Shown piece by piece: positions 18,118 through 58,920 of a DNA stretch of 64,000 nt. The notes below the pieces were generated by a model that saw nothing but the letters and a program-made list of their open reading frames with translations, searched no databases and was not told the origin of the DNA. Location of the stretch: positions 4,000,662-4,064,661 of the forward strand of contig OZ037770.1 in NCBI GenBank assembly GCA_964035545.1, in the 5' to 3' direction. Made by a program: the position numbers and the translations under genes. This DNA is from Bugula neritina (lineage: Eukaryota > Animalia > Bryozoa). Within the stretch, counting starts at the first letter, position 1. Each line of letters begins with the position of its first letter.

Positions 18118-18562
18118 TGAATGTATTCCAGGGCTTCGCACAAAAAGGTTAAAGAGCATCGATACATAAATCATTCAGCTTCGCATCCTTTTCATTTGAT
18201 GGAACCGTTTTAATGAATTTGTGTCCTTAAAGACACTGTCCCCATTCATCAATGAGAAATTCGTTTGCACAATGCAGTCCTTGGAGGCTAGCTAAATATA
18301 CCAAGACTGATGTAGGCTAATAGTATAATATTTGTACCAATCAGATTATAGAGTAAATCCTTACTTCAGTGTTATATTAATATGTTACACAGTGTCTGGT
18401 TTGTTGTAAGTAACTGACCAGATATCCCTGTTAGGCCAATCAAACCGAGTGTTAGAAGTTTACTGTCCACAGTACAACACACTCTGCAGTAACCACACTT
18501 GAAAGCTGACATTAGATTCTCCCACAACATTGTTTTGTAAAACAAGTTTAATTTGCACTCAG

Positions 18563-29978: not shown

Positions 29979-31914
29979 TTAAAAGTTGTCCTCTCTGCTA
30001 AACCCATCAAAGCCAGGAAACAGGTAAAGTCTTTTACGGGGAGGAAGAGTCTTCCAGATTACAACCAAATTTCTGCTTCTCTCTGAATCTTCATCTGCAT
30101 AGAGTTTCTTAACTAGTTTAGTCTGAACCTGTAGAGTAAGTAATGACTAGTAAAACGGTTCATCAATTCACTACTAAAAGTAATAAGGTACAGCTCTCAG
30201 CTGTTAGAATATACTTTAATAATTTTGAGTATAGTAAAACTTTTGGAGTTGTCCGTTACAGTCATGTCATTTGATAAAATGGACTAATTATTAGCAGACT
30301 ACAAGAACATATTAAAGGAGGAGAGAAACTATCAATATAATACTGAGCCATTATCCTAAAGAAATTGAAACAACACAGACTAAACTCTATAATTTAAACA
30401 AGTAAAGCATTGAATGACTTTCTCTTGTACTCAGAACAAATTAAATTGTTTCTTTCAAAAAACATGATAGTTTGAACATGGAGATGAAAGAGATGCCACG
30501 ATGAGGAATAGTTTTTGGCGTAAAAGTTAAAATAGCAAAAAACTTTTGAGCTTTTAATTTACCTGCTGAAAGATGGTGTAGAGATCACGGTGACAGGCAT
30601 GTTTGTAGATTGAAGATACTAGAGCTCTAATCATGGAAGATCCATACTCAGGATGTCTCTTTGATGCTATAATAATATTAAATGCAGCCAAAATCATGGT
30701 CTAGTCAGCCAAAGTATAAGATGTTTTAAGCTAAAGTGTAACACAATTTAAATCTCAAAGTTCTAGAAAACATTTTAGTCACCTCAGTTTAGAAGCTTAT
30801 CAAGTCAACAAGATTAAAACGCAAGAAAAAGGCAAAGAACAATTTTTAGATAGGTGACAAAGTACAACAGTTTAGAAATATCAGCCAATCACTGACTCTT
30901 ATTATACTTACAGCAGACATTACTCTTCAGAACAAGAAGATTATCAACATCCAGTCTTGTCATACATTCTTCTATTCTAGGTGCTGGTGGTGAGACAGGT
31001 CTGATGGGTCTTATTACGCTGGGTGTCTCAGGATATACAATATCATCATCATCAGATTCAGAGTGTGTAGAAGAGACAGCTTCAGTTTCCTCTTCTTGAG
31101 CTGCTGCAAGACCAGATCTGTCTGGATTCACATCAACGTTTGCTGTAAAAAAAACAAACGCATTTAAACTTGCACCGTGATGAGTGAAAAAGAAATTTGA
31201 TCAGTACAGGAAAAGCTTTTCAAAGGTCTCTGTATTGTTTTCACTACTTGACTAAAAATGAAAGTTTCCTATACAAAAATGTAATTACTTCCACTGCAAG
31301 CTTCTAGGATAACAACTGTAGGTTTAGGCTTCAGACTCAAAGGAGCAAGAAAATCATACAAGTCTGTAAGGTTGACCTTCTCAAGGTCAGTTCCATAGAT
31401 ACAGTTATCTTCTTCACCATGACTCATGACAACCAGTATTTGACAACCCAAGCCATTGTTTTTCTCTCCTCTTATCTCAGACTTCACAGCAGACAGCATT
31501 TCCTACAAATTTGAAAATAACTATGTTTAATAATTGATACAAAATTATGATAAATGAATAAAATAATAATTTCCGAACCTGCAAAAAAAATTGTGACCAG
31601 CAGCAAACACCCCGCTTTGGGTTTTCTATACAGTCTTAATTTTCGAGCAATTATAAACTGAACAGTTACAGTCCATCATTGTGTAAATTTTTGAGGTTTG
31701 ATGATTAAGTAGTGCTCGTATTACCTTCACCATAACAACATACCTCTGCTGTCAGGTCTGTGTGTGTCTCAACATCAAACTTGAGAGATTTCAACATGAC
31801 AGACATGTTCTCAACATCAGCATCTGAACCTTCCCTGCATAAGTCTGGTCTTTCAACAAAGTTCTTATTGTTTATTATCAGAGCTCTTCCTCTCTCTCTG
31901 GTCATACTGAACAC
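29979..31914 (-). CDS. Caspase (peptidase C14A) domain exons of the ROCO-caspase gene
   Basis: Five exons encode p20 (His in VMSHG, Cys in LEACSG), an acidic linker and p10 ending LYLFPGFDGFSREDNF*. Confidence 0.92.
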
Positions 31915-34900
31915 CTGGATACAAATATTGTTAGAGTATTGCATACAGTAGTAACGTACAGGAGTAAAGTTATCCAGTATATGATGAAACACTTTAAAAA
32001 TAAATAGCTATTATGAAGTTAGATTTTAAAACTCTAAACTGGCCTCAAAGTTCTATGTCTTGTAAAACACTGGTCAAACAAACTTTTGTAACATTCATTT
32101 TACACCTCAGTTACTTTTTGTATTTTAACTTTTATATGTTTATTAGCTATTTGAGTAGCATAAACTATTGTATTACAGCAAATGATATTTTTAACAATGA
32201 AACATTCCATTGCATTTGGTAATCGTTCAAGCATAAGAAAATACTATTAAGGTATGGTTTAAAAACAAGAGTAGGCTGCAATTACATTGATTCCGATCAA
32301 TTGATAATAGGTTGCAATCAACCCTACATTTCTACAAATCAAGTATATAAATTGCATGGTAAAGCAATAGAAGTAAATAATGACGATTCTTGGCTATATT
32401 GACATGCCATATATTTTGACATTTAAAGTCTCATATATGCACTGAATTTCCAAAGCCAAACGTTGTTAACAAAGTGTCCACCAATTCTAAAGATACCATC
32501 AGATGCAACAGAAAAAATTATGGTAGAAGTACAGAGAAGTTTAAAGGTTTCAGGAAAAAACGACATTATTAAATATTTGCCCCACTAGAATTACTCAACA
32601 AAGACTGCTGGGCAATGTTAACACTACATCCCATTCACTTCTTCAAAACACCTCTGACCTCTCTACCTCTCCTCTTTATTTACACCTGGCTTTTTATCTC
32701 TCTCGGAAAACTACTTATGCTACTCCTACTCTTCTCAAAAACCCAAAATAAGTCATAGAAATTTACAAGCAGGTGCACAAACCAGTACACCAAAGTAGCT
32801 AAAAATCACAAAACTATATATACATCCTAATTTGCATGTGACAACAGATTGAACCTTAACCAAACAGACACACCACAAAAACTAAAATGGCTAAAAATTA
32901 AGAGTTAACTGATGTAAACTGAAAAATTGCCTTCAGACTGTTGCAGTGGCTTTTTGGCAGCTTTCCAAAAATAATTGTGTAACGAAAGCTATTTGTGAAA
33001 ACTTTCGCGATAGCTATTTACTGACAGTTTTTGATCGATGAGTCAGTGTAGCTCAATTTTCCTCCTGCTAAAGATGCAGGCAATCTATACTTAATTGTCA
33101 AAATAATTGTAAGTATCAAGTAAAACGTATATTATCTTCTGTTTTGAACTTCATTAACTAAATGTTTTGTCAGCTATGTAATTAATGTTAAGTTAACAAT
33201 GTTTGTAATTTTTAGGGTTATAAGTTACAGTAAAGTATAAGTACAGTATGAGTACAATTATGAGTATATATGAGTTTAAGTATGAATGAAGTCTAACTTA
33301 AAAAATATACTGTATGCAATAGACAAAAATAGAGTTGTGGCTTGCATCTGTGTCCTCCATTCGTTCACCCTTCATTAAATGAACCATAATACATAGGCAT
33401 CTGTGCCAAACAGCACCCGTGCTGACGTAGCAACAATTATCAGCTGATACAGTAACCACTATCGAATCGGCTGTCACACAGACTGATCTTTTTCTAGAAG
33501 TAGTTCAACTACTAGACATGTTTATCTAGTAAAGAGAGTCTATAGACATAATATATTCATCAACTGATACATTCACCTTGTCAGTATCCGAGAACAGCTG
33601 CTTTATCTTTGGGTTGGTGGTTGGCTTCAATTCAAGTTGTATTAACTTCAGGCCTTCTTCATTTTTTCCATCAGGGTACAGATTGTCATCATTTTCAGAG
33701 AGATCACTCTGATCATCAGCTAACATTTCTAGACAGTCATTCAAACAATTGATTTTTGTCATCATTTGAAAACTATACAGTTAAAATTTTGCTTAATCAT
33801 TAACAGCAAAAAGCAATGGATTACAATGGACGCATGCATAAAAAAGCTTTTAGATATCTACATGTATGGCAAGCTTTGCAAAACAAGGAGTTTTATCAAA
33901 TGGTGGCTGTACACATAGGTCATTTTACTTAATTTAGTACACACTGGAAATCTCCAGTTTTTAGCTATTTTTTACAATTTAGCTGCTAATGAACATGGGT
34001 TTTGCCCAAAAGTAGTAAAGCCTAAATGAACACACCTAAAAAATCAAGGTTCCTCTAAATTTTGCTTGATTTGTCATGTTTTTTTCTAATTATTCAGCTA
34101 CTTTTGATTTCAGAGAGTTATGGTTTTTTCATGACGGCCTGCAGTCAAAAGTAGCTGAATAATTAAGAAAAAACATGGGAAATCAAGCAAAATTAAGAAG
34201 AACCTTGATTATTTAGGTGTGTTCATGACACAGGTCATACTCCTGTACTAACTTAAGTAAAATGACCCACATCAAGTTCTATCTAAAAAATTTACCAGTT
34301 GAATTGTTTTGATCTCCTCGCAGTTTGAGCTCAGCAACTAGCTTCTTCAACTTATTTGATTCTGTTTCTGACAATTTCTCACCTGAATAAAACAAATAAG
34401 ATTAGCATTTCTAAACTTTAAAGAATTTAAGTTACGAGATACTGACATGTGAATAGGAGCTTATGCTTTTAAGTTGCCATTTTATAATTAAGACAAAATA
34501 TTCAACTAATTGCTCAAAATTTTTACTAAAAGTTTTTTTGCAACACAAAGTAGTAAATATTTATTTGTTGAAACAATTATTGAAAATATTTCTGTTGAAA
34601 TTCAATTTTATGAGTGAACATACATGGGTGGATTAAAGCGCTAGGGACCTCCTCTTCATTACATAACATTTTTGAAGATCCATCACATTTCTTGACATTA
34701 GGTGGCAGCAGGTTTTTTAAGGATCGAAGACACCATTTGGGGTGAAGGACTTCTTTAGGACAGGAAACCCCCAGTAGCAAGCAGTGAGCACAAATGCAGG
34801 TAGTGACTGGTCGACTAGCAGTCCAAGTCTCCATAACATGTCTGAGGATGTTGTTGTTGACCGAAATGAGATTCTCCCACATTCTGGAAATGTTGGACGC

Positions 34901-37900
34901 ATCAGATGAAACATAAAGTAAAACTCTTCTCAATGCGTAATCGTGTACCAGTCTTGTGTATATTTCATCTTGATAGACATTAGCACCATTCTTCTTCACT
35001 TCCATTGTGGCAAAATCTTTAGAAAACATTTCTAATAAACCAACCGTCATCTGATGGTAGACATGCTGTGGTAATGCCAGACCATTAAACTGTGTCTCGG
35101 TATGAAGCAGTAGCTCTTTTGGTGGAGTGTAGAGGAGGCTGTAAGATTCTTTGGCAAACTGAGGGATTATGAAGTAAGAATCATCAGATTCATCATTCCT
35201 AGGGCCATACAACAAACGGAACGTGCTGAGCAAACAAAGCCCAATTTCAACATCACCCGGATTTCTAAATAAAGTTTCCTGAGCTATCAGATATTCAAAA
35301 AGGGATTGCATCATTAGGCCAGTTGCTTGGAAGTAGTTCACAGAGTCTTCAAAGTCTTGCTTCTCAATTCTCACTCCTCTTGAAAAATATGGTTTGAACT
35401 GATCTACTCTGCTCTGCCATATGTCTGGATCATGGTGATACAAAACACACAGCAGTTTAGTAACTTCTGTGATCTTGTGAAATATGTATGGCCTGAGCGC
35501 ATCAACATTCTTATACCAGAGAACCTTTCCGCAATCATGCATGTACATGAGAATGGTATCCAATTGGTTTCTATCAATGTCATCCCGTTCTTTCTTTATC
35601 TCTGCCAGGATTTCATCAAAAGTGTTGTGTGCAGACTGCAAGAACAACACTTTTGTGTTGACATCTTCCCAGACTTTTGGAAGGAGTTTGATGAAGTGTT
35701 GGCAACTTTGAAGGAAAGATTTTTTAATCGATTCGAATATCTTGTACTCATCAACTTTTCCAATTTCATAGATACTTCCATTTTCAAAGATTTTTCCATT
35801 TGATTCAGTGAAATGTTGAATTCGAGCAAAGTCACCTTCTAAACTTTTCTCATCTTCAAGAATATTTTTGCAAAACTGCTCAGACACTTCAAAAAAATTT
35901 CTTTGAAGCTGTTGAAACTTTTCTTTCTGAAACTTATCTTTGTGCGTGAAGACAAGCTCAGGCGGGCCAAGAGATGGATGAGCGAGATAGAGGTGAGACA
36001 TGAAATCAAAGGCCAGCTTTCTTACAGCCTCTTCATCTGTAGACTCATTCGACATCTGATCATACTGCTCCATGTTGACTACAATGACCGGTACGCAATT
36101 CTGTCTCAGTGTTAAATGGTATGTGATATGGTAGACCTCCTGGCCTCCCATATCTATGAGACGAAGAGTTGTACCATCCACCTCTACCTCTTCCACATTA
36201 AACACCTTTGTGGTCTCATCATGCTCTACATTTGAACTTCTGTCAGTCAAAACTCTTTTTTTGTCAGTGCTCTGTAAATTTCGAATTAGACTGGTTTTAC
36301 CTGCCATGGTGTTCCCCAACACTGCTATTGTCGCAAATGGAAGATTTCTACCAGTACCCTTAGCCAAATCTGTGTAGTATTGTCGCACAGCATCTAATCC
36401 TTTTTTACAGACTTCTAGTGGAGGAGATGTAAGAGAATCGCAATCATTTATATCCAGTGTATGGAGGCGTGTTAGCTGTAGTATCTCAGGTTTCAAGGAT
36501 GTCATGGAACTGTTTTTGGATATATTCAGTATGTGCAGATTACTCAATGCACACACCGGAGATGGTAGATTGGTGAATTTATTGGAAGATATGTCTAGTG
36601 TCTGTAACTTTTGTAGATTCTGTATCCTAATAATATATTATATTCATATTATCAGCACATACTAGAGGTAAGTGAGATCTAATTATAGCTGTCATAAATC
36701 TACAATGATAGTAAAGCAATTATACACAGAATGCAGACGTATGAAAATGACAATGACTACAGTGACTTTCTTGTATCAAACCTTTTAAAGTAGCATGGGA
36801 TTTAATTGTAATTCTAGAATTTTAATTTATTGGTATTCTCACAATTATCAAGTGTTTTTTGATATTCTGAAGTATTTACAACACTACAACTACAATTAAT
36901 TGATAAAAGATATTAAAGAAGTATTTTACTGTCATAATTCATAATGCTTCCATAAACAATGTTGTTTTATATAACATGTAGTTGAGTATAACTGTTTACA
37001 CTGATATTTTATTTTAGTAATATATACTATATATTTATACTCCATATATAAAGGGAACAGCCGTGGTCTAAGGGCTAAAGCATTCGATTTGTGAACACGG
37101 AGTCAGGGGTTCGAACCCCGACAAAAGCCATTGGTGATGTTAAGAAGAGCATCCAGTCATAATTGCTCCTGTGTCTCATTTGAACAAGTCCTTAGCCCAT
37201 TCTAACAAAAACTCTTTCCATCAGGCGTTTTCTCACAAGGATAGCGACTAAAAACTTGCGTGAGTTTTTATATATACTATATATGGGTCATTTTACTTAA
37301 TTTAGTACACACCGGAAGTTTCCAGTTTTTAGCTATTTTTCACAATTTAGCTGCTAATGAACAAAGGTTTTTGCCCAAAACTAGTTAAATGTTAATCAAC
37401 ACACATAAATAATCGAGGTTCTTATTAATTTTGATTGATTTTCCATGTTTTTTCCTAATTATTTAGCTACTTTTGATTGCAGACCGTTATGGTTTTTTCG
37501 TAACGGTCTGCAATCAAAAGTAGCTGAATAATTAGGAAAAAACATGGAAAATCAATCAAAATTAGGAAGAACCTTGATTATTTAGATGTATTTATTGAAA
37601 TTTTATTAGTTTTGAGCAAAAACCCTTGTTCATTAGCAGCTGAATTGTGAAAAATAGCTAAAAACTGGAAATTTCCAGTGTGTACTAAATTAAGTAAAAT
37701 GACCCATATAATATACAGTTATAATCAAACTAGATAGAGACAAAGTTATCATGTATGAGTCTGCATGAAGTATTACAGAAAGTAGGTCAGGGAAGAACAT
37801 AATACTCTTCTGTATATTCTAGTAAAAAATATTAAGAAATACACTTTTTGAACAGAAAGTTCAAGTTTTGATCAACTTTGCTACAATATGATGAAATACA

Positions 37901-40900
37901 AGTTTAGGGTACCATTGCACTATATTGCAGGGATATTACGTGTGCATTCTTTAAAAGATAGTTTTGTAATTTATAAAGGAAAGTGAATTATTGAACGTAT
38001 TATAGATATGAACAACTTGTTATGTATACACCATTTCTAGCTTTACAGAGGAGAGGTATGAACACCGTAATGTAGTTCAACTGTGTTGACTATTTTGCTA
38101 AAAAATGTTTTAAATGGTAACTCTATTGTGACACACAAACCTCTCAGGTAGAGTAGATAATCTACAGTTCCTCATATCCGCCTCTTTAAGTGATGTGAGT
38201 GATGATACAACTTCTGGTACTGTGTTGAGAGGATTCCCTCCTATGTCTAGTTTCTCTAACTGAGTCAGCTGACATAGACTGTATTATGAAGTGTATGATA
38301 TATATGTAGTCTGCATTACTATAATATTTTATACTATATTCAAATTTTCTTTTCAACAAGGTAAAACTATATACAACTTAACTACCAAGCAACTTATTGT
38401 AGCATTGTACATGCAGAGCATATTAGAAGTTAACATTTTATTATAATAGTATACAAGTATTCAATTATTATATATATTCAGTGTGTGAATACTAATAAAC
38501 TATACAACTGATGACTATTATTTACATTTTATAGCACAAGAATATATAATGGCATACCTTAAAATTTCGTTATTTTTCGTTATTTTCACAACAAACCATA
38601 TTTCATATAGAATTCAAAAAAATTGCTTTTCACATATTTTTTCAATTATATAATGACATGACCTAGTTCTACTTGGTAAGGAACTATTTTATGATTTCAA
38701 GTATTAAATGTTTCAAACAACACAAAAACCGTGACAAACAAACCTCTCAGGTAGAGTAGATAATTTACAGTCTCTCATATTCAACTCTTTAAGTGATGTG
38801 AGTGATGACACAACTTCTGGTACTGTGTGAAGAGGGTTCCTTCTTATGTCTAGCTTCTCTAACTGAATCAGCTGACATAGACTATAAACATGCAGTGTTA
38901 GATGTATTTAGTTTCACTTATACAGAGTACAATTACTAGAGTTGAGATAGCTACCATATACTACCAAATTATACTATCAATTTATTCATTCATAACAGAT
39001 CTATATATAAAGTACCATATACTATCATAACGCTTGACTACTAGATAAAAGTAGAACAGTTTATTATAATAGTACACAAGTATTTATTTTCAAACTCACT
39101 GAATACAATATAATAAACTAGAAATTATTGCTTACTATTAATTACATTTTTATAGCACAACAATATATAATGGCATATAACTTTAAAATTGTGTTATTCC
39201 CACAATATTATAAACCATTGCATATATATGTGTGTAACTTCAAAACATTGCATTTCATAATTTTCAATTATACAATGGCATACCATAATAACACTTGGTA
39301 TAAGCATAATTATAAAGATGTCAAATATAGAATGTTTAAAACAATACAAACGTTCTGACACACAAACCTCTCAGGTAGATTAGATAATCCACAGCTCCAC
39401 ATATCCAACTCTTTAAGTAATGTGAGTGATGTTACAACTTTCAGTACTCTTATAAAAGGATTCAATCCTATACGTATAGTTTTTCTAGGTGGGTCAGCTG
39501 ACATAGACTGTAATATAAAGTATATGATATATACTTAGTCTGCATTGTGAGATGATCCAATGTTGACAAGCAACAAGCTAGCAGGTACTAAAGCTACTGA
39601 CAAGTGATAGCCGAAGGAAAGCCAATGCAAAACACTTTGGAGCTAGAGCTTAGCCTGGAAGGTTAATATTACATGCATTACTATAATATTTTATACTGTA
39701 TTCACATTTGGTTTTCAACCAGGTAAAATTATATACAACTTAGCTACCAAGCAACTTGATATTACAGCACAGTACATGCAAAGCATGAAAAAATATCAGT
39801 TCATTATAATAGTGTAAAAAAATTAAATTATTATACTCAGTGAATGCTAATAAACTAGAAATTTTGGCTTACTATTCACTAAATTTTATAGAGCAAGAAT
39901 ATATAATGGCCTACCTTAAAATTATGTTATTTTCACCATATTACAAACCACTACATATATATCAATTCCTTTAAAAAAGTGCATTTCATGTTACAGAGCC
40001 TGAGAAGTTAACAGTTTAATATAATAGTATACAAGTATTCAATTATTATTATATATACTAAGCTAGTAAATACTAAGCACCTATACAACTGCTTACTATA
40101 TATTATTGACATTTTATAGCACAAGAATATATAATGGCATACCTTAAATTTTGTTATTCTCACAATATTACAGATGATATTTCATATAGAATTCAAAAAA
40201 TTTGCATTTCCCATATTTTTCAATTATATAATGACATGCCCTAATTATACTTGGTAAGAAACTCTTTTATGATTTCAAGTATTAAATGTTTCAAACAATA
40301 CAAAACTGTGACAAACAAACCTCTTATGTAGAGTAAATATTTTACAGCTCCTCATATTCAACTCTTTAAGTGATGTGAGTGATGACACAACTTCTGGTAC
40401 TGTCTTAAGAGGATTCCAACCTATGTCTAGTTTCTCTAACTGAGTCAGCTGACACAGACTGTAATATAAAGTGTGTATTATATGTATTCTACTGTATCAT
40501 ATAATGACATATTGTAATGGATTTTAGATTATGTTATTATCGAAAGGATAACTCTTTGTGGCTTACTCTCTATACGCTGGGCATAATGGCTATAAGTACT
40601 GGAGATCAATTATCATAATAGCTGACAATTGGAATGCGTACAATCTACTGGACAATTATTGCTAGCTACTAATGCACGCAGTTAAACAAGGCAAGACTAG
40701 TTAAATGGAATCAACAACTGTAGGAGGCGTAGATGGTTTGCACTGGCAGTTAGCTGCTTAGTAGCAGATGCTAGTGTTATGCTTATGGTGATGGAGTTAA
40801 TTGGTATTGACAGAGACGACTCGGCGTAGACTGTTATCCGACAATATCTTACAGTCGACAGTGGCACCACTAAGGCTAGCCAATCAGGACAGTCACACTA

Positions 40901-42038
40901 ATTGATAGCAGGTGGAGCTAGCTACTCATAGTTGCAGTGCGCTGAGTAGCTAGCCGGCAGAGCAGCTTGGGACTTCATTTAGAGTAGTTGTGTATTAAAG
41001 CTCACTAATTATGTAATCGTTTTCTATTCATGCTAGCAGTAAATAACCTTCTTGTATTTGTGTAAATAATAAAGTTATCTTAGCGTAAACAACCTGGTGC
41101 AGTGGCTTTGATTAAGTCGACCCACACATAATAATAGTGAACTGGCAAAATTCACTACAATATTCTGTACTCAGTTATAATGTAAATTATTTAGCAAACA
41201 ATTTTGTTGAGACAGGGTACAGAAAAAAATGCTATTACGTCATGTTATGGGTGTAATGGGTGCCCTGTGTAGAATTGAGTGATTAGGTGTGTTTGTATAT
41301 AGACATCGTGTTAGTTTAATAAATAAGGGTTACTCTACAATGTAATGCTAATATATAGTATGATTTATAATAATAAATGGTTTAATTTGTTATAGCTAAT
41401 CTGACACAAATTAGCATGTATTTAATATTCTGAAAATATTTTATTTTTAGGTATATGGCTACATATAATATGCTTATATATATTATGTGTTGCAAATATA
41501 AACCTTCTGTATAATCCTACATGTATACATGTACTACAATAATAATATGTTACTTCTGCATTCAACTACATAAAACATGTTTTAATTGATGATGGCATGT
41601 GTAACGCTACAGACAGTTTCCCACTGTCTAGTTTCTACAACTCAATCAACTGGCAGAGATACAATGTTATACATATATTACTATAGCTTTATATTGTGCA
41701 TGATTACATCATGAGTAAAAGTATACTTCAGCATTGACTTAGATACATACATCGTGGGTGATAAATATCACAACTAAACTCATTTACACAGCTATCATAA
41801 TAGACACTCACTTGTCTATACTTGTTCTGTCAGTCAGGTTAGAAACACGTAGACACAGGGCTTCACCAGCAATCTCTCCAATGTTGTTTGGAATATTCCC
41901 TTTCAGTTTAAGATCTGTGATATCATAACTCCCAACTTCATGTTTCACCTCAGCAGTAGTATATGACTTGGTATTAGCTTTCTATACATCCCACCAGTCT
42001 ACAGGAGGCTGACCAGAATGTCTGAACCAGATTCTCAT
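29979..42038 (-). CDS. ROCO-caspase fusion: LRRs, Roc GTPase, COR and peptidase C14 (p20+p10); 5' end uncertain or damaged
   Basis: Exons in transcript order: ~42043-41812 (in-frame TAG), 40458-40321, [39507-39368 frameshifted], 38881-38744, 38278-38141, 36626-34624, 34382-34296, 33728(or 33719)-33577, 31914-31744, 31502-31289, 31142-30912, 30666-30563, 30128-29979 (TAA). All GT-AG with matching phases. Roc motifs GNTMAGKTS, DMGGQ, THKD; COR-like PKVWEDV..YMHDCGKVLWY; caspase RGRALIINN, REGSDAD, MSHG, EACSG, SKRHPEYGS, KRLYLFPG. Confidence 0.85.
33917..34268. mobile_element. Foldback MITE, internally deleted copy of 37285-37705
   Basis: Termini ggtcattttacttaa / ttaagtaaaatgacc and an internal palindromic core. 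Confidence 0.8.
34624..36626 (-). CDS. 2003-bp exon: last LRRs with cap, Roc GTPase, COR region
   Basis: ORF 34577-36556 extended to the acceptor at 36627-36628; SPPLEVCKKGLDAVRQY cap typical of ROCO/MFHAS1-type proteins. Confidence 0.92.
37053..37265 (+). mobile_element. tRNA-derived SINE (best-preserved copy)
   Basis: A-box tggtctaaggg, B-box ggttcgaacccc; family copies at 24299 and 61840. Confidence 0.75.
37285..37705. mobile_element. Foldback MITE, almost wholly palindromic (~210-bp arms)
   Basis: gggtcattttacttaatttagtacacac... / ...gtgtgtactaaattaagtaaaatgaccc, flanked by atat on both sides. Confidence 0.9.
38141..40458 (-). repeat. Tandem array of LRR exon + intron units (exons 38141-38278, 38744-38881, 39368-39507, 40321-40458)
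   Basis: Each intact exon is 138 bp, consensus LCQLTQLEKLDIxxNPLxTVPEVVSSLTSLKELxMxxCxLSTLPE; the introns are also homologous. Confidence 0.93.
39546..39673. mobile_element. 128-bp TG...CA insertion with TGCAT TSD (short solo LTR-like)
   Basis: tgcat at 39541-39545 and 39674-39678; the paralogous intron near 38311 has the empty site ctgcattactataat. Confidence 0.75.
40513..41159. mobile_element. Solo LTR, 647 bp
   Basis: TGTA...TACA termini, ATAT at 40509-40512 and 41160-41163, internal AATAAA near 41067. Confidence 0.75.
41504..41659 (-). pseudogene. Degenerate LRR pseudo-exon
   Basis: Minus strand LCQLIEL*KLD resembles the cassette start; no AG at the expected acceptor. Confidence 0.55.
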
Positions 42039-43099
42039 ATTCTCTGTAACATCATACAGTGACAGTGTAATTATTACACAGTGCTAGCAGGTGATGTCTG
42101 TCATTCTGAAACCTGTCACATAATTATAACTATTATTTGCTGTGTGTCAGACACTATAGCTATATGTAGACATGTCTGGCTACTTTAGGTTTATGAAAGT
42201 AAAATTTGCAAATTTAAAATGATATCTAATTCCCTGAAAACAACTGCTTTGTGTAGAATCTTTGAAATTATGCCGCTTCGGTTCCAATAAAGATCTTTTT
42301 AAATAATGTTAGCATATATTTAACCTTATATAAATATATTAAATCATTTTAAAATCATATGAATTTAAAGCAGCCAAAATAACGCTGAATTATTATTTCA
42401 TATCCATGCATGCACAAAAAACTACAAATAGCAACACTAAGTAAAAACTTTCTATATCTGACACTGCATACTTCCTACCCTATGAGTCACACAGGAGAAA
42501 TGTGGACTAGTATGTAGCTAGAACACTTTCTGATAGTGAAATATATAGACCTGATTATTTGAATGTTACTCATATATTTACTATGGAAACAAGCAAACCA
42601 CCATAGAAAAGTTTTTGAAAACTCTTGTCCCAGTAGGTAAAACTTTTACTAGTCTTGCTAAAATGAGATTCATACTAATGCAGAGCTGACTTTGTTGAAA
42701 CCTACATTTAAATAAATGCTAAGTATTGTCTAAATACAAATAGTAACAACCAGTAGATAACTTTTGTTAAAAGCAAAAATTGTAACTTGGCTTTTCATTA
42801 GAAAGTTATCAAAACAACTCACCATCTGTTACTATGGTTACCAAAGATTTTACTGCTGATTTATTTCAATTCTGTATATCTAAAGGTAGGCAGCCCCATC
42901 TGTACAACAGGTTTAAAATAAAGAGGTATTATGATATAAACCATTGCTGATTTCAATTATATCAATGAACTTGCCAATTCCTATCAAGATGAGATGTATA
43001 ATCAGTCAAGATAGATAAACTAATCAACTCTCGAAACGCATGTGTATATGTTTATATATATGTGTGTATATATATACTTTGGTAAATTATAGGTCTGTA

Positions 43100-43856: not shown

Positions 43857-46800
43857 TGTGACGGAGTCTCCAATAAAATGCTGAAACTCCGACATGATTG
43901 ACATTGGTCATATCGGACAAGTCAGAGCTTCGACTCAAATGTCCGACATGCCTGATGTCAGACAAAGACCGGTTTGCAGCATACACAAGTAGAAGAGATA
44001 AAAAATGAAATAGAATAGTGTTGCTCTAGGCTAAATAATAGAAAAGTAAAAAACTCCAAAGGTCCTCACACTCACTCCCCATCGAAAAGTATGATCACTT
44101 TTCAACAACTACCAAAAAAACACACAGAGAAACAAGAGGCAAAGAATAAAATAATATAATTGAAAAAAGGTTAATACACACCATTATTTCAAAGAAACGA
44201 AGTCACACTCACACATACATAATAAGATGAAACCAAATTCACAAACTACCACTGGATTAAATAATGAATTAGGTAAGAATATTGTCCACACATAAGTATA
44301 CAAGTGTACATAATACAGTCCCCTCTCTCCTCGGTGCTTAAGGCGAGAGACATGTCACTTGAGGTAGAATAACGTCTCCTGATGGCGGCACATCAACCTC
44401 CTCAGCTGACATGCTTAGCCTTTGTAGGAGCTCCATCTGCTGCTAAAGTAGCCTGCTGTTTCTTGACTTTGTCTTCTGTGTTGTTGTCTGCTTTGGTACC
44501 GGACTGCTGTTAACCCGAAGCTGGGTGGCTGCTGACTGGGTGGCGGTGGCTGGGATGTTCTTCGCATTGGTCTTGTCGATTGTTGGCTGGCAGGCCAGAA
44601 ACTTTAGAGCAAGAGCTGCCTGTTTGTGGGGTTCCCCACGTGTTGCAAGATTAGGTCTCGGAATTTCAAAAAAAATGCCTTATCGACTACAATTACATCT
44701 TGCCCGTGTGGCAACGGGCTATGTGCTAGTGGGGCAGTATAAAATTCTGTTTGTAGGAATACTCATAACATGGGCAAAATACACTGGTGACATGTTGACC
44801 AACGTGCACTCTCCTTTTCTGGTGGGTGAAAAACCTACACTCGCACTAACGGCATTTGATATTGCCCTACTCACCACACATTCGGTAAATCCGGATTCGT
44901 TTCTTGCTGGTCGTCCAGTGCCGCTGCGAGGTGAGGAGACTGTGTAGCCTTAGGACTTGATTGCCTTTCTCTTCGCTATCAAGTTAGTTAGTGGAAGCTG
45001 CCCTACCGCCAAGGATTGCCTTTTCCTTTTCTTCAGACTGTCGCAGGTCTACAGGGTCGAGGACAGACTCATCTGGGAAGGCTGGGGAGACCACTTTGGG
45101 CTGTTGATAGCTGTGCCAGGGTTTTAAGGGGAGCGAGAGTCAATGGCGCCCTCATACACACAGGTAGCTCAGGCATAACTAGGAGAATAGTCAACTCTAC
45201 CTCCTTATCTAAAAGGTAATCATGAAGAAACTCTCTTTCCAGTTTTACCCAAGCCTCTTCAAATTTCACCAGCTTAGTTTCAATCAAACCAATTGTTTAA
45301 TTGTTTAGGTCTTGCTAGACTCCTAAGGCAGAGGATCTAGCCCGAAAGAAATACCTGGCTGACTAAAGTTAGTGTTTTCTGGCAGAGTAAATTCCATGTC
45401 GTGGCAACAGTTATCCGAAAAAACATGTCTGCTCGTTGGGGAGTATTTAGTTAAAGTGCCTGAACCACATGTTATCAGGTTTTTATTTGACAACTTTGCG
45501 GTAACGTGCCCTGTCACCCAGTTCACTAAATATCACAGGGACAAATCTGAAAAGTGGAGTTCCTTTAAGTTTTGACACCGTTCTTTAGCCACTTTTTGGG
45601 AATTTCTTCTTATCCCAGGATTAGTCTCAGTATTGGACTTAAAGCATTTACTCGTACTGAGTGTACAACTCCCCCCTCCCTCCTGGTAGCATTTCTAGGT
45701 GCCGGACATGGTAGTCAACCAGTATCTGAGCAATCTCCTACTTTTTTGGCCTTCATCTAGAACTACAGGTAGTGATGAAGTTTGTTGTTCTGCGGGTTCT
45801 ACGGGTGGTCCCGCCTTCACCCTCCTCAAGGATGGAGAGCGTCTTCTACCCCGAGAGCCACTGGGTCAAATCTCAGAGCTAGCTGGACCAGGGTTTAGAT
45901 TGAGGAGCGGTTCCAGTCCACCATCTGGCCTAGAGATGAAGATCTGCTATTTCCTGTGTTGAACTGTGTCCCCTCCCAGGATGTGCCACAAAGCTGGCTC
46001 TCATAGTAGAGGTGTGTGTCCTGCAACGTCCGGGCCGGCTCATGGTGGCTTTAGCGGTTGCTTGGTGTAAACCAAGATTGGTTCAGAGTGCTCCACTCAA
46101 TAGTTGTGGTTGGGCAAAACCTCCACGCCACATAAGGGTCCAACAAACTTGGCCCGAGACTTAGCAAACTGTCCATGATGCCTACAATAACTGATCATCC
46201 AAACCCAGTCACCTACCTGTTACAGAAAAGGGGGTTCTCTGAATCTTCCATCGGCACCTTCCATTGTTTCTCCTGCAGAACTTCATGGGCTATACTAATT
46301 CTCTCTATCAGTTTCTCGACATACACATGTAGTAAGGAATTGGGCACTGGAACAAGGTAAAACATGCGTTCTAGAACCCTGGTCCCTCGGCCAAGCATCA
46401 GAAAGTGTGCTGTAGGGTGGCATGATTTTCCTGACTCCTGCTCAAGTGTCGGCTCCTGGGAGCATCACTCAACATTCTGTTGTTTCGCTCCATGACTCTA
46501 TTCACTTGCGGGAAACATGGAATTTTCTGATTCTGCTTCAACCCCTAGATTCAGCAGAGGTCACAAATTAGTTGGGACCAGAACTGAGCATCTTGGTGTG
46601 TAGGAATGTTTTCTGGTAACCCAAAATAGCAGAACACATGTTGGTCTCGAGCATGAGCCACTATGAAGCTGACATGTTTGGAATAGCCCTTGCGTATGCT
46701 AAACAGGTGAGGTGGTCTGTGAGCACCAATATCCAGATGTTTCTTTTAGCAGAAAACAGCATAGGGCTGACTAAGTTCACCCCAACCATTTTCTACGGCC

Positions 46801-48730
46801 AACCGGCGCATAGCTGGCGCCCACCAGTGTAGCCAACTGAGGACCTGCTCCATGGGTAGTTGGAAACTTGCCATGGTGGACATTAATACGAATGGCAGTA
46901 CTCTCCACTTCCACAGCCTTTTGTGGGTAATAAATGCTGCCTCGTACTGAGCGTCAAGACCGAGGGGAAATTGCCAGTACCCACTCAGCGGATCTGAAGT
47001 ACTAAAGAGCTTGGTTCCTGCAAGGGCATCCAAAAACCCGTGCACCTGAGGGAGGGGGTTAGCATCCTGAATGGTAACACTGTTGAGCTTGCGGTAGTTC
47101 ACAAAGAATTTTCAACTGCTACTCTTTTTTTGACCATGGGCTGGCTCAATCAAGTCATGATCAAGAAGCTTTTGCGCCTGTCAGCCCGCTCCTTCTCTAG
47201 GCCCTGCGGTCAAGTTGGCTGCCTTATTGGGACAGTGCGGTGTGCCATGGGAATCTTGTGGTGGATAATTTTAGTCAGCCACATCTCATTACCTCCACAG
47301 TTGAATATGCCACTGTACCCAAGGAGTAGTTCAGCCCGTGTTTGGCACTCCGAGCAACTTGTACAGCTTCCACAGACTCATTCATACAGGTTCGCCACAT
47401 GCTTCGAGACCATTCTCCGTCTAGTCCAAGAGTGGGTTTCTTGGGCGCTGGGCACTTTCTTCAGTACCAGTCTCACATCTGTTTCTTGGATAAAGTAGTA
47501 GTTTGCTACCAATGCACCAGTCAGCAGTTTGATGTGTTGGTGCATTGCCCGAGAAGCTCCCCAACAGTCCAGCCAATTCAAGCTGTTTGTCAGTCAAATC
47601 TTCCTATACATCCCTTCCACCACTTCAAGCCACGTAACCATCCTGCAGTTAACCCTGCAGTGTAGGGTCACCTGGGATTGTCCTGGGTTCTTCCCACCAA
47701 GGGCCTGTCAAATTTGTCAACACAGATAAGTTTTTTCTCCCAGCCATCACCACAGCTGACTTTTAAAAATCCATGTGACACTGGTGTTTTTCCAGAAATA
47801 AAATGCCCAAGATGGCATCCTCCTCAAACAAGTTGAAGAGAAGGTCTTTTAGATCACGTGATCATGAACTGGCCTAGGTAGTGTAATGATGCCATAGAAA
47901 GAAAAGCCTGACCCGTCTGCTAACGTACCATGTGCACCTTCACATGGCTCAAGGCTTGCCCGTTTCTGAGTGCAAAAAGTTTTGAAGAGATCCTGATTCA
48001 CCATGTTTATTGTGAACCAGTAAGAAAGCCCCAGTTCTACCTGTATTTTTATCGAGTAGAAAGTATCTGCCACTGTACAGCTGGGTGCTCCTAAAGCAGT
48101 CAGTGTTTGATGGAAACACTTTTTGGGTTCTTGACCATCAGAGACATTCCATGACCAGGGCATATGCTGATTAGCTTGAGTCTGCTGCATTTTTATCAGC
48201 GCTGCCTGCAGGTCCTTCACCGTATCCAGCAATATGGGAAATTTTGTAGAGGCCGGCTAGGTCGTGGTATCAGCCGCAACTTAAGGTCCTGGCTTGGTGG
48301 GTTAGACCGCCTCCTGTGCTGTTTTTTCACAATAGTTAAGAAAGAAATCTGCTCCTTGGGTCTTTTCACTTAATAATAAGCTTTTCCCGTCTCTCCTGCT
48401 ACTTCAATAGAGTCTACCTAGCCGCCAGAAAGTAGCGCAGTAGTCCTGCATTATTTAGGGTTCTTAAAACCAACTGATATGCCAGGTTCTGCGCTATTTT
48501 TTGTTGGTTCGACAGAGGGCGGCCCATGACAACCTCTCTATCAGGTTATTGTGATCTTGAAAGGATGTCCTATGCCCTTTTGAGACTCTGCAGCTTTTCT
48601 CATGCCTCTAGGGCCTGAAAGATGTATGTGGCTATTGTCAGAACTCAGGTCTTAACACTTCGCCTTATCTGTTAAGCAGGTCCAGAGCTGGAGGAGTCGC
48701 ATCGTCGCCAGCAATTCGGTAATGGTGGCC
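43857..48730 (-). mobile_element. Decayed Ty3/Gypsy element related to 52634-60078; ends approximate
   Basis: RT remnant NYRKLNSVTIQDANPLP..SGYWQFPL (46746-47102), integrase tail (46213-46398), protease HGTLADGS (47849-48232), ORF3 zinc-finger remnant (~44700-44865). Confidence 0.85.
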
Positions 48731-53208: not shown

Positions 53209-54282
53209 TTAACTGCGGGCCGCACGCTTCATGCGTTTAATAGACTCCTGTAAATATTTGAGTTCACTGGATGCAGCCTGCACCCGTGGGGCCAGTCTGT
53301 ACACTTCTTGCTCCAAGTCGTGTGCTCTAGCTTCTACTTCACGTAGGTTGCGGGCCCAGGGGGACGAGCGAGAGGAAGTCGGCTGTCTGTGTCTTTTCCG
53401 CTCTGAGGATGGAAGGGGAGGAGGGAGTGTATACGCATTTGTGTCTACTCTCTGTAGTACGACACGAGGAAAGGTATGCGGTATGCGTAGAGGACTGTGA
53501 GGTGGAGAGTTAGTAGACTGTGTAGGTTTATCTGCGGCTCCAGAGATGATGGGTCGCGGGGAAGGGAAGTCTTGCTCCAGGCGAGATAGCCGAGCTGAGT
53601 CAGTGATGAGTGGTTTGATGGCGTCGAGAAAGGCAGGATAGGATGATTCGTCTACTTCATAGACATGCCCTTGATAACACTGCATAGTACGTTGGTGCCG
53701 CAGTAGGTAATCACGATTGTAGCTATATTCTCCGCAAGGGCAGAAAGTGATGATGTAGTGTTGCGGCAAGTGTACTTTCAGTCTGCGGTGGGTTGTGAAT
53801 CGCTGCTGGCAGAGGTTGCATTCACGATTACTCTCACCTCCTTGATGGGTCCTAATCTCTCTCTCTGTGGCAGGGGTAATCCAGTTGGAGGTTGCTTCCA
53901 ACTGGGGTGGCAGTTGCCTTGTTGTAGAAGTTGTTGGGGCCGGCTCTGGGTCCCACGCCATCTCTAGAGAAGGCATGCCCGGAGAGACGGGCGCGAGTGT
54001 GTCTACAAAAGTAGAATTATTGTTAGATCGCGGTGGATCTTTACAACATAATTCTAGTGACTGTCGACCGTTGCTAGCCTGAGAGTCACAGCTTTTGGAA
54101 TGCACTCGAGGAACCGATGAATCATGTGTGGACTGACCAAGAACAGTGTCTAGCTCCAGGTCTAACAGACCGTCGGCCATTACAGTGTCTTCATCGTCAT
54201 TCACATGAAACGTGGTTCCCAGTAATTCTGATTCAATCTGCTGAATTAGTTCAGAATTTACTGGCATCGAGCCCGTTTCCAT
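53209..54282 (-). CDS. Retroelement ORF3, 357 aa: low-complexity N-terminus, C2H2-type zinc finger(s), C-terminal coiled coil
   Basis: CNLCQQRFTTHRRLKVHLPQH, then FCPCGEYSYNRDYLLRHQRTMQC; heptad-like LREVEARAHDLEQEVYRL..LKYLQESIKRM. Confidence 0.8.
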   Translation of the reverse strand: METGSMPVNSELIQQIESELLGTTFHVNDDEDTVMADGLLDLELDTVLGQSTHDSSVPRVHSKSCDSQASNGRQSLELCCKDPPRSNNNSTFVDTLAPVSPGMPSLEMAWDPEPAPTTSTTRQLPPQLEATSNWITPATEREIRTHQGGESNRECNLCQQRFTTHRRLKVHLPQHYIITFCPCGEYSYNRDYLLRHQRTMQCYQGHVYEVDESSYPAFLDAIKPLITDSARLSRLEQDFPSPRPIISGAADKPTQSTNSPPHSPLRIPHTFPRVVLQRVDTNAYTLPPPLPSSERKRHRQPTSSRSSPWARNLREVEARAHDLEQEVYRLAPRVQAASSELKYLQESIKRMKRAARS

Positions 54283-57200
54283 GAATAGGAATACAAGACT
54301 CGTACTGGCTTACCTGGGAACTCGGTATTAATGTCCATACTCAACGTTCTTGGTAAGATTGGAGCTGGTTGTGAGATACGTCTGCCTTTGGCGATGTCAG
54401 CGTAAGAAAAGGCTGAGCATCGTTTCTGAGGCACGAGGTCGGAACTATTTGCTTTACGCGCATTAATTCCTCCCACTATTCCGCCCTCGCAAAAGTTGAT
54501 ATTTGCGTGGGGTTCACAACTCCAACATTTTATCGTACGGTTTTCCCCTAGACTTTCATGTGCGCCGCTTCTAATGCAGTCACATACGAAGTCTTTTAAA
54601 TATAGTGGGGGTTTCCTCGTACGCTGTCCCCTTTCTAGGGGGGGTGACACGCTTGCCGGTTCGTTAGTAGGGGCCTCTAATGGCGTCTCTACTTCACCGT
54701 TAGCGGTCACCTCTTCTTGTTCTCCGGATGGAGCCCCTCCCTCCGTGGGGGTTTGCACTTCCGGAACCGGCTCGGTTTCTGGAAGTGATGGAATTAGACT
54801 TGGCGGTGGCGGACACGCTTCTGTTGACAAAAGCTGCCGCTCCTCTCTCACCAAGTTTTCTTCCCGCGGTATGACCACTTCGTATTCAGGTCCATGCCGC
54901 CGTCGCCCGCGCGTCGTTGTCTGCCTCCTGGGCTCTAACAACGGGGGGGCTTCTCCCACTCCGTCGGGGCTAGCCCAATACGGTTTCAAGCGAGACTTAT
55001 TCTGGATAGACACCTGTCCTGAGCGCTCGATCTTGTACGTGTGATTGGGCATAGCCTCGACGACCACGTAGGGGCCTACAAACTTAGGCTTCAGCTTATC
55101 AGCCTGTCCGCGACGCCTACGGTAATTGACCATCCACACCTTATCTCCCGTTTGATAGAGAGGTGGTTCATCGGAATCTTCGTGCCGCACCTTCCACTGC
55201 TGTTGGCGCAGTATATCGTGTGCGGCCTTCATCCATTCCACTAGTTCACTGGCATACTCGTGAACCGACTTGTCTTGCTCTGGAACGTGATAGGTGAGAT
55301 GGTCAGGGACACGAGTCTCTCTCCCGAGCATCAAGAGGTTTGGGGTCTCACCAGTACTGGTGTGTGGGGTGCTGCGGTAGGCACGCATGACTTGCGGCAA
55401 CACCGTATCCCATTCCTCTTGACCTCGTCCAAGGAGGAGACTCCGGAGTGCATCACCCAGCATCCGGTTGTTGCGTTCCACCACCCCGTTACCTTGAGGG
55501 TGGTAGGGGGTGGTCCTGCTCTGATTTACTCCCCAGAAGTGGCAAAGGTCGCTCATCAGTTAAGACTGGAATTGAGCGCTTTGATCAGAGTGTATCTGTT
55601 CGGGAAGCCCAAAATAACAGAATACATGTTGGTCTAGTGTCCTGGCCACTGTTGGGGCTGATGCATCTGGGATAGCCAGAGCATCCGCCCACCGAGTAAA
55701 GTGGTCGGTTAGTACTAGGATCCAATTATTGCCTCTGGGGGTCAGGGGCATGGGTCCGACCAGGTCTACAGCGACTACTTGCCAGGGCCTACCAGCATAT
55801 AGCCTCCGCCTTCCTGCTTCACCAGGGGGGCGGCTATGCTTACTGGCCTGGCAGATATCACACTGTTTGACTCTGAGCCGGACGTCACGCTCTATTTGTG
55901 GCCAATACCACCGGAGTCGTAATTTGGATATCACTCTCTTGACCCCTGCGTGGGCCTGTTTGTGAGTATCCCAAATCAACTCACGGCGGATGGCCGTGGG
56001 GCAAACTACCCTCTTCCTTTCCGGGTGTCTGCCGCTGGCAGCTAGGGAGATGGTGAGTAACCCATCCTGCCCGATCCGCAGCGAGTCCCAACGCTGACAG
56101 TATAGCCGGAACTCGGCGCATCCCTGTCGTATGCGTTCTTCGCTGGGTCGTCGCCCTTCCCTTTTGGCCCGGTATATGTCTGCCACGACTCCAGGCAGCT
56201 CTTCTTGGAGCTTCTTCAGCTCTCGAACATTACCGGCCAGTACAGGGTTGGCGCGTAGGTTTTGTACATCCTCCGGGGACTCATTAACTCTTTGCCTGAG
56301 TTGACCTTGGTCCCAGTCAAACGGTGCTCCGTGATGAGCCAACGTCTCCAACTCGCATCGCGGGGGACCTCCATCCCTCCTCTCGATGTGGAGACACTGT
56401 TTGCAACCTCCGTCAGGTCGGCGACTCAACCCATCCGCATTGCTGTGTCTCTTGCCCGGTCGATGTTCGATCCGGTATGAGAATTCAGCTAGGATTTCGA
56501 GCCACCGGGCGACCTGACTAGAGGGCTCTGCTCTCTTGCACAACCAGATCAGCGAGGCATGATCCGTACGCAGCCGGAACTTCCTGCCGTATAGGTATGG
56601 TCTGAAGTGCTTCACTGACTTGATTACTGCCAGCAGCTCCTTGCGGGTAGTGCAGTAATTTCGTTCAGCGGGTGAGAGAGACTTGCTGTAGTAGGCTACT
56701 ACTACCTCTCGGCCTTCCTCCACTTGTGACAGCACAGCGCCAACATTTTGGTCACTGGCGTCCGTGTCGAGGATGTACTCCAGAGTGGGGTCTGGGTAGG
56801 CCAAGATGGGCGCCGTTAGTAGGCAGCCCTTGAGGCGGTCGAACGCTTCCTGTTCGACTGGGGTCCACTGCCACGTCACTCCCTTTGCGGTGAGCCGGTT
56901 TAACGGCTGGGCTATGCCCGCAAAGTCCGGTATGTATTGCCTGTAATACCCTACCAGCCCCAAGAAAGCCCGGAGTCCGGTCAAGTCTTGGGGGGTGACC
57001 CAGTCTTCTACTGCCCGTACCTTTTCGGGATCCGTTGCCACGCCGTTTCGACCGACAACGTGCCCCAGGTACTTGACCTCCGGCTGCAATAGAGCGCACT
57101 TGGAAGGCTTGAGCTTAAGACCGGCACCTCGGAGTCTCTCGAAAACCTCCTGCAGACGACTGACATGTGTCTCGAAGTCTGGAGAGATTACGATGACATC

Positions 57201-58920
57201 ATCGAGGTAGACCAGCAGTGTCTTCCAATGGAGTCCGCTAAGGACTTGTTCCATCAGCCTCTGGAAGGTGGCTGGGGCGGAGGTTAACCCGAAGGGCAGC
57301 ACCTTCCACTTCCACAAACCGTCCCGTGTGATAAACGCCGCTTTCTCTTGGGCGTCGGGACTCAGAGGAACCTGCCAATAGCCGCTTAGCAAGCCTAACG
57401 TACTGAAGTACTTGCTACCGGCTAGGGCGTCCAATGACTCGTCAATACGAGGTAGAGGGTAGGCGTCCTGTATGGTTACGCTATTGAGTTTGCGGTAATC
57501 CACACAGAACCGCCAACTGCCGTCTTTCTTCCGGACCAGTACGACTGGCGAGCTCCACGCACTATGGGCGGGCTCTATCAGTCCCCGGTCCAGAAGATCC
57601 CGTACTTGTCGGCTAACCTCCTTCTCTTTCTCCGGCCCCAGCCTGCGTGTGGGCTGCCGGACAGGGACTGTCCCTGCAGTCAGCGGTATTTCATGTCCGA
57701 CAATTCCAGTCAGTCCCACGTCATGCTCCCCGCTGCTGAACACATCACCGTAGTCGCGTAGTAACTTAGCCATAGCTTGGCGTTCTCTGTTACTCGCGCA
57801 GCCGCCACTGGCTGTTTCGTATAACTCCCGGAGATGTGTTGGGACTGCCCCTCGTCCCTGAATAGGGTGTCGAGGGGGTGCCTCCGTCGCGTCACCCAGC
57901 GACGGGCCCACGTCCTCTTCCTGGACGGAGTGGAACCGGCCCAGCATTGACCCAGCTGGGAGCTCAATGGGCTCGGTAAAGGGGTTGACACACTGCACTA
58001 AGACCTCCCCTCGCTCAGATAGTCGGTTTAAACTACTGGCGAGTTGGATCCTTTCGTGCGCGCCTTCAACGACCCCGAGCCTGGCTATCCGGTTGCTGTT
58101 TACTCGGCAGTGGATAGTAGCTCTGGAGCGTCCGGGTACGGTGCAGTTTCGAACTACCTGAACACCGCCCACCAGAGGACGCCCAAACTTATCCACACAG
58201 GCGAGTTCTCGCCCGCCCATCAGCACCACCGACTTACTAAAGTCTATTCGGCACTGGTGTTGCTTCAAGAAGGGCATTCCGAGGATAGCATCTTCCTCCA
58301 GTTGACCTATGATAAAGGTCTCCTGTACAGCCTGATCTCGGACACGCCCAGGGAGCTCGATAATACCATAAAAGGGAATACATGACCCGTCTGCCAGGGT
58401 GCCATGTTCCCCAGTATACGGTCGTACTCTATCCCTGTCCCGGCGGGGCAGTGCCTCAAAGACTCTACGACTGAGAAGGTTGGTAGTACAACCGGAGTCG
58501 AGCAGGAAAGTGACGGCGTTGCCGGCCACCTTTCCGGGTAGGAAATAGCTCTCTCCATGTGGTTGTACTTTCACCCCCCCCTGCATGTGCTGTCCTGGGT
58601 TGACAGGACGGCGGGGGTTTCACCCGTGGTTTACGGGGCTTCCGGCGGCGAGGTTGGTGCCGGCGGGGTTTGGGCCTCTCCACTGGGCCTTCTGGCTCCA
58701 TTTCAGTGGCGGGCTCCTCTTCCCGAGGTAACCAATGAAACCGGTTAGCGAGTGGCAGGGAGAAGGTACTTGGCCATTGTGCGGGCCTACTAGTCCTACG
58801 TGGTACCTGCCACTCGGGTGGAGTGTTCCGTCGTGTCCGTACGGACAGACGACGGCGTGTTCCACCATACTCCTTCAGTTGCGGCCCGCGGGGAGGGAGA
58901 GTGTCCGCGGGCCGTGACAG
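54258..58920 (-). pseudogene. pol: pol (PR-RT-RNaseH-IN) with disabling lesions
   Basis: FLLDSG, YLDD, DTDAS, HHCC, VAVDL..HSD..VERNN. G8 frameshift at 58574-58581, RT TLGL instead of TLDL at 57393-57395, TAA at 55560-55562. Confidence 0.92.

Follow-up and report, generated by a model that had tools for sequence, protein, structure and literature searches.

Symmetric LRR cassette exons in an LRR-Roc-COR-caspase gene family of the bryozoan Bugula neritina: a candidate receptor family with a probably disabled member

We analysed a window of 64,000 nucleotides of the Bugula neritina genome (contig OZ037770.1, positions 4,000,662 to 4,064,661), whose minus strand carries a gene with a predicted chain of LRR arm, Roc, COR and caspase. 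The gene model was checked exon by exon, and searches and folding were done on separate exons. The N-terminal exon (41812-42112, 301 nt, exit phase 2) comprises a 5' untranslated part and 75 codons from an ATG at 42038 that is common to 10 of 11 paralogues. A Pfam search with the N-terminal domain (41812-42038) gave no match, and a short patch near its codons 14-21 varies among paralogues. It is followed by four cassette units that are read from the sequence, U1 (40321-40458), U2 (39368-39507), U3 (38744-38881) and U4 (38141-38278), and by an exon of 2003 nt (34624-36626, phase 2 in and 1 out), which encodes about three additional LRRs, then a Roc GTPase and then COR. Two linker exons are predicted by sequence only, one of 87 nt (34296-34382, phase 1/1) and an acidic one of 143 nt (33577-33719, phase 1/0). 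Caspase exon 1 (31744-31914, phase 0/0; Pfam PF00656, E 1e-10) precedes caspase exon 2 (31289-31502, phase 0/1; PF00656, E 2e-06), which carries the catalytic His (SHG) and Cys (EACSG). There follow a predicted inter-subunit linker exon, acidic, proline-rich and without a Pfam match (30912-31142, phase 1/1), and two in-phase exons that are small-subunit-like by eye: a probable caspase small-subunit exon (30563-30666, phase 1/0), which we take to resemble a caspase small subunit, and the last coding exon with the stop, probably the small-subunit end (29979-30128). Neither has a relevant Pfam match alone. In the exon-by-exon check all seven exons 3' of the Roc-COR exon stay in phase up to the stop at 29979.

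The introns carry several further elements. An insertion of about 650 bp in the first intron (40513-41160) is missing in paralogues, as seen in the intron comparison. A degenerate remnant of a cassette 5' end, without a usable acceptor, lies in the same intron at 41625-41659, and the intron around it is conserved among paralogues. Between U4 and the Roc-COR exon, a hairpin repeat element with 210-nt arms that are 92% complementary occupies 37280-37710. It occurs in very high copy number in all four sequencing runs compared, and a second copy of this MITE-like element lies in another intron of the gene (33910-34277).

The initial annotation had drawn a parallel to exon-shuffling ROCO genes, and the gene is indeed a ROCO in view of the Roc match in Pfam and the structure match of Roc-COR. 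The Roc domain scores above cutoff (E 1.6e-07), and its G1, G3 and G4 motifs (G86-K87-T88, D135-G138 and T204-H205-D207) are invariant across 40 sequences. The COR domain directly after Roc is only weakly matched by Pfam COR-A, below cutoff; it is recognised by structure. The predicted structure of the Roc-COR exon (pLDDT 87) matches the Roc-COR of LRRK1 and C. tepidum over approximately 700 columns, with LRRK1 8e05 (E 8e-23) and C. tepidum Roco 6hlu as the best Foldseek matches. The assignment to caspases (peptidase C14) is given by PF00656 matches above cutoff on two exons with the His-Gly and xACxG motifs kept. This C-terminal caspase had been overlooked, as had the size of the family and the probable disablement of the copy in the window.

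Four exon-plus-intron units had been reported between 38141 and 40458, and they are indeed present on the minus strand with start-to-start spacings of 603, 624 and 953 nt. The intact exons U1, U3 and U4 are of phase 2/2, as described, 138 nt long and bordered by AG/GT: one base finishes the incoming codon, 45 full codons follow, two bases remain at the end, and the junction codon completes two 23-aa LRRs. The motifs quoted for the units (GW, GL, RR and GG before NP; NMRS, DMWS, NMRD and DMRN before C) are all found, e.g., GW..NMRS in U1, RR..NMRD in U3 and GG..DMRN in U4, while those of U2 are readable in a shifted frame only. The scaffold was called nearly invariant, which is too strong a term for this copy: 12 of 45 positions differ among the three intact units. 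Five of the 12 are hypervariable sites of the family; the differences cover 5 of 7 such sites against 7 of 38 others (hypergeometric p ~0.01, calculated by hand). The C-terminal end of U1 deviates from the cassette consensus, and U4 has Ala in place of the conserved Leu33. The intact cassettes of the window align gap-free with 23-residue LRR proteins, e.g., Leptospira LIC11098 and SHOC2. A chance origin of the cassettes is excluded because a 23-nt pattern finds 323 matches in the genome and its reversed control finds 2.

The gene belongs to an LRR-Roc-COR-caspase family of at least 67 genes; a scan of the 216-Mb genome returned 140 candidates, 67 of them scored Roc-COR matches. One cluster of 3.8 Mb (C6, 2.5-6.3 Mb) harbours 30 of the 67 Roc-COR ORFs, and a second cluster is located on C1. 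A caspase catalytic exon lies downstream on the same strand in 30 of 30 genes of the C6 cluster, in 28 of them within 8 kb. The closest named relative is a Roc-plus-caspase protein of Bugula neritina, at 35% identity. Closer relatives, with up to 78% identity, stem from a metagenome whose contig names contain AY690838, presumably the mitochondrial accession of B. neritina. In relatives at 33-50% identity, Roc-COR is preceded by an exon of phase 2/2 that encodes two LRRs in 138, 141 or 144 nt, and in three of four of them a caspase match lies on the same contig as Roc-COR. Since relatives at this low identity keep such an exon, the cassette design is old within the group. Some loci have an unusual layout: one start exon and the next scored Roc-COR exon are 95 kb apart and enclose many cassettes (G000:C6:6032011-6127455), and others (C6 3873277 and 3886088) are without a scored Roc-COR partner. 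Start exons with distant or absent partners are possible giant arrays or orphan donors.

Cassettes were sampled from approximately 0.3 Mb of family DNA picked by likeness to the window, and the sample is skewed to about 20 genes of one subfamily. Within it, 100 of 104 cassettes are intact, with 138 nt and AG/GT borders, in 91 nucleotide and 87 peptide variants, so that length and frame are kept in 96%. Entropy reaches 2.0-3.1 bits at positions 11, 13, 14, 34, 36, 37 and 39 and is at most 1.2 at the others. The variable residues are the exposed x positions of LxxLxLxxN/C, in good agreement with the initial annotation. In the structural model, the counterpart of cassette position 11 is part of the LRR beta-strand, with those of 13 and 14 following it; residues at such positions face the concave side of the repeat array. 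A site-wise dN/dS comparison across cassettes, which had been suggested as a check, was carried out and reveals a nonsynonymous excess at the exposed codons. Pairwise dN amounts to 0.67 for the six main sites versus 0.07 elsewhere, with a scaffold dS of about 0.12-0.13, and codons 11 and 34 show a pN of 0.30-0.37 at a pS of about 0.01 or less. In our own codon-model fit of the 100 intact cassettes, M2a is preferred over M1a (LRT 306; omega ~6.6 for 16% of sites), and the sites with a posterior of at least 0.999 are exactly the seven named above. The signal remains when each half is given its own tree (LRT 76 and 115). Because recombination inflates tree-based selection tests, the exact omega is unreliable, but the contrast within the exon is robust. 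In the cassette alignment (L001-L050), third positions of the scaffold level off near 9% difference, and flanking introns reach 30%; the plateau reflects either exon-centred homogenisation or a constraint on the nucleotide sequence.

The cassettes are gained, lost and exchanged in the germline. The initial annotation had anticipated gain and loss, and the number per gene varies from 3 to at least 14: eight genes covered from start exon to Roc-COR exon have 3, 4, 4, 4, 5, 5, 6 and 14 cassettes, and another gene, covered in part, has at least 14. Exchange between genes comes in addition. One cassette recurs, identical or with one change, in five places spread over three genes, and between two of these genes Roc-COR differs by 8%. 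For 75 of 100 cassettes the nearest neighbour resides in a different gene, identical half-exons are joined to different partner halves and hence form half-exon mosaics, and the PHI test on scaffold sites gives p values of 0.002-0.02. All 106 cassette matches in the 0.3 Mb lie on the strand of their gene, and none was found on the opposite strand.

Judged by its similarities to neighbouring genes, the gene in the window is itself a mosaic. Its start exon matches theirs at 90-95%, and the first 700 nt of its Roc-COR exon are mostly 84-97% like those of five close neighbours. The remainder of this exon falls to 58-85%, where two of the neighbours remain 90-99% alike. The caspase exon at 31289-31502 shows yet another pattern of likeness, different from that of Roc-COR and of the start exon, with 86-92% identity to one set of C6 paralogues and 65-73% to another, which includes the nearest neighbours. 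Whole domains thus seem to have been reassorted among genes.

Splicing of the cassettes can be followed in run X7 (presumed RNA-Seq), whose contigs join the N-terminal exon to a cassette and cassettes to each other. The letters between the joined pieces equal the predicted splices exactly (10, 36 and 2), and the predicted exon borders are therefore supported. These contigs differ in letters from the window and hence derive from paralogues or alleles rather than from the gene in the window. They show inclusion joints only, and contigs cannot phase isoforms. Joints between cassettes make a strict choice of one out of many unlikely, and a Dscam-type exclusive choice, with one array exon per transcript, was rejected on their account. 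Two apparent skips (39389 to 40357 and 39394 to 38781) were discarded. In each, the number of intervening letters is the same as the within-exon offset, so that a single paralogous cassette has been split in two by the mapping. A VLR-type donor array was likewise rejected, as each gene covered has its own spliceable cassettes between start and Roc-COR exons, and a plain tandem repeat or transposon is contradicted by open frames, splice sites and spliced joints.

Two lesions mark the copy in the window. Codon 19 of the first coding exon is an in-frame TAG (41982-41984), which the initial annotation had not mentioned and which occurs in this copy only; the 11 paralogous N-terminal exons carry a stop at this codon in no case, and the remainder of the exon holds no in-frame ATG after it. 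Cassette U2 is 140 nt long, with two extra bases that would shift the reading frame on inclusion, since its splice sites are intact. It is also decayed, with 16 scaffold differences from the consensus against a mean of 4.7 and a maximum of 12 in the 100 intact cassettes. Because of the early stop and the frameshifted cassette we regard this copy as probably a pseudogene, which may still donate cassettes. Lesions are frequent among its relatives: they are found in five of eight genes covered from start exon through Roc-COR exon; the window gene is one, and the other four have a cassette of 136 nt, a stop, an insertion of 5 nt and an insertion of approximately 690 bp, respectively. The family as a whole is the object of interest, and the window copy probably a broken member of it.

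How does this family compare to known systems? The LRR-ROCO genes of Ectocarpus and other brown algae are exon-shuffled and have been proposed as immune receptors without functional proof (PMC3341825, PMC11378527). Common to both are the order LRR-Roc-COR, LRRs on repeated symmetric exons in variable number, recombination within and between genes, diversifying selection, many pseudogenes and clustering. The combination of variable exon number and recombination is seen here in 3 to at least 14 cassettes per gene and in shared and mosaic cassettes, and diversifying selection on exposed LRR residues is found as well, with tree-based tests inflated by recombination. In contrast, the algal type I exon encodes one 24-aa LRR in 72 nt, and intact inverted LRR exons reside in algal introns; the bryozoan exon has 138 nt for two 23-aa LRRs, and no inverted one was found in 0.3 Mb. 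The bryozoan family moreover has an animal host and an added C-terminal caspase. It is a ROCO family that works like the algal exon-shuffled genes without the algal exon type and inverted exons, plus a caspase, and the likeness is probably convergent. Bacterial LRR-AP-GTPase(Roc)-COR proteins are interpreted as counter-invader systems and have variable C-terminal effectors that include caspases (PMC8195603, Fig. 6D text). They share the domain order of fast-evolving LRRs, Roc, COR and caspase effector and are multicopy, but they are intronless and vary in the effector, whereas the bryozoan effector is constant and the sensor is built from cassettes. By our own judgement, the bryozoan caspase has animal-type motifs and introns, unlike the bacterial one, and the best bacterial sequence matches reach just 19-32% identity over parts.

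Among animal ROCO proteins, LRRK1/2, MFHAS1 and DAPK1 as well as ROCO-TIR/CARD/Death proteins of Trichoplax and Aplysia have been described (PMC4104024, PMC9334734). They share the Roc-COR fold and ties to immunity or death signalling with the family, but comprise few genes with kinase or adaptor domains and no catalytic caspase, and cassette arrays are unreported in these two papers. We found no paper describing a bryozoan ROCO or an animal Roc-COR-caspase protein, in a literature coverage that is incomplete. NLRs combine a nucleotide switch, an LRR sensor and a death effector, and lamprey VLRs are composed of modular LRR cassettes with a variable concave face. The sensor-switch-effector plan is shared with NLRs, which use a STAND ATPase instead of a Roc GTPase as the switch. 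With VLRs the family shares modular LRR cassettes that vary at the concave face; VLRs, however, are assembled somatically from donor pieces into an incomplete gene, and the bryozoan cassettes are ordinary spliced exons inside complete genes.

Implementing all facts, we consider it reasonably probable that the four units are germline cassette exons in a large birth-and-death family of LRR-Roc-COR-caspase genes whose ligand face is diversified by selection, that the intact members are cytosolic receptors and that the copy in the window is a probable pseudogene. Unequal crossing-over and gene conversion would remix the LRR arm and make it longer or shorter with the frame preserved, because every cassette is symmetric and the scaffold near-identical, and selection would diversify the concave face of the arm. 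The intact proteins are most likely one-piece receptors of sensor, switch and executioner in the cytosol. Binding of a ligand to the LRR arm would release the Roc-COR GTPase switch, and the Roc-COR dimer cycle might then bring the caspase domains together, with proximity activation leading to proteolysis or cell death. This receptor mechanism is suggested by domain logic and by the brown-algal ROCO and bacterial LRR-AP-GTPase-COR parallels. The pattern of the family looks as expected of non-self receptors, which we put forward as a candidate role.

Several other explanations have to be weighed against this one. It is very improbable, and already largely contradicted, that repeated exons merely expand and convert without selection and that the variable codons are an unconstrained or mutation-prone surface. 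The first LRR alone would agree with this, as a neutral fast-mutating class with a 6-fold rate fits it better than M2a and omega is indistinguishable from 1 (LRT 0.6); so would the frequent lesions, and a scaffold synonymous divergence (~0.12) below intron divergence, by which conversion may deflate dS. For the whole cassette, however, a free omega (4.2) outperforms the neutral fast class (LRT 35), which is also rejected for the second LRR alone (LRT 14). A tree-free comparison points the same way: in the seven codons, divergence at first and second positions is 0.26-0.48 versus 0.03-0.30 in the flanking introns, and it is higher in every bin (e.g., 0.26 vs 0.03 and 0.40 vs 0.07). The exposed positions 8, 9, 31 and 32 stay conserved (dN 0.06), and the maintenance of length and frame in nearly all cassettes likewise speaks against neutrality. 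We also consider it unlikely that the gene in the window is active and that its stop and 2-nt insertion reflect a rare allele or errors of the assembly. The remaining exons are intact, as are the splice sites, the GTPase motifs and the catalytic dyad of the caspase, and among the listed contigs none spans either lesion; yet the lesions are two and independent, one of them being a substitution, the scaffold changes of U2 exceed those of every intact cassette, and U1 and U4 show unusual substitutions, too. Four runs list no other letter or indel at the lesions, which is weak evidence as no listed piece spans them.

A further alternative concerns how the variety arises. Cassette skipping by alternative splicing, or somatic rearrangement, might give one gene many LRR arms, which we find rather unlikely. 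Symmetric phase-2/2 exons allow it, and it would let genes with a frameshifted cassette function; one gene (C6:2607428) has such a cassette with intact splice sites and open N-terminal and Roc-COR exons, and LRR exons of brown-algal ROCO genes are alternatively spliced (PMC11378527). Nevertheless, all joints seen, from cassette to cassette and from N-terminal exon to cassette, are compatible with plain inclusion, germline duplication and exchange account for the variety seen, and skipping of U2 would leave the codon-19 stop of the window gene in place. Very doubtful is an anticipatory system, in which broken copies supply cassettes to dozens of such genes and the colony remixes these further by skipping or by somatic gene conversion; sensor arms wired directly to a caspase would then differ between zooids or cell lineages. 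As for the target, colony allorecognition in place of the detection of microbes or parasites appears distinctly unlikely. The genes are clustered, hypervariable and linked to a death effector, like fungal incompatibility systems, and bryozoan allo-incompatibility with cell death is mentioned in PMC8195603. On the other hand, dozens of paralogues on several contigs are less suggestive of one polymorphic locus than of a repertoire for sensing pathogens. The allorecognition proteins known from animals are located at the cell surface, whereas the predicted exons are, by eye, without an evident signal peptide or membrane segment.

For bryozoan immunity and colony recognition, which offer almost no molecular handles, the family provides candidates with testable wiring. 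One chain unites sensor, GTP switch and caspase. The family would be an animal counterpart of the brown-algal exon-shuffled ROCO genes, probably of independent origin, and is relevant to the unsettled issue of an NLR-like role of ROCO GTPases as immune switches. As its caspase is fused to Roc-COR, it also offers a simple read-out of how the Roc-COR dimer cycle controls an effector, a matter of debate for LRRK2. The copy in the window contributes mainly evidence of birth-and-death turnover and of mosaic structure.

Other elements lie outside the gene. A second retrotransposon-like element, GC-rich and decayed, is located directly upstream of it (~44300-48300), and a Gypsy-type LTR retrotransposon resides on the minus strand at 53209-59741. 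The ORFs of the latter comprise a gag-like one, a protease-RT-RNase H-integrase of 1008 aa and an additional zinc-finger-like one. An ORF on the plus strand (18553-18876) presumably resembles a proline dehydrogenase exon, and a simple repeat array of approximately 600 bp with a 6-nt unit is found at 15687-16281.
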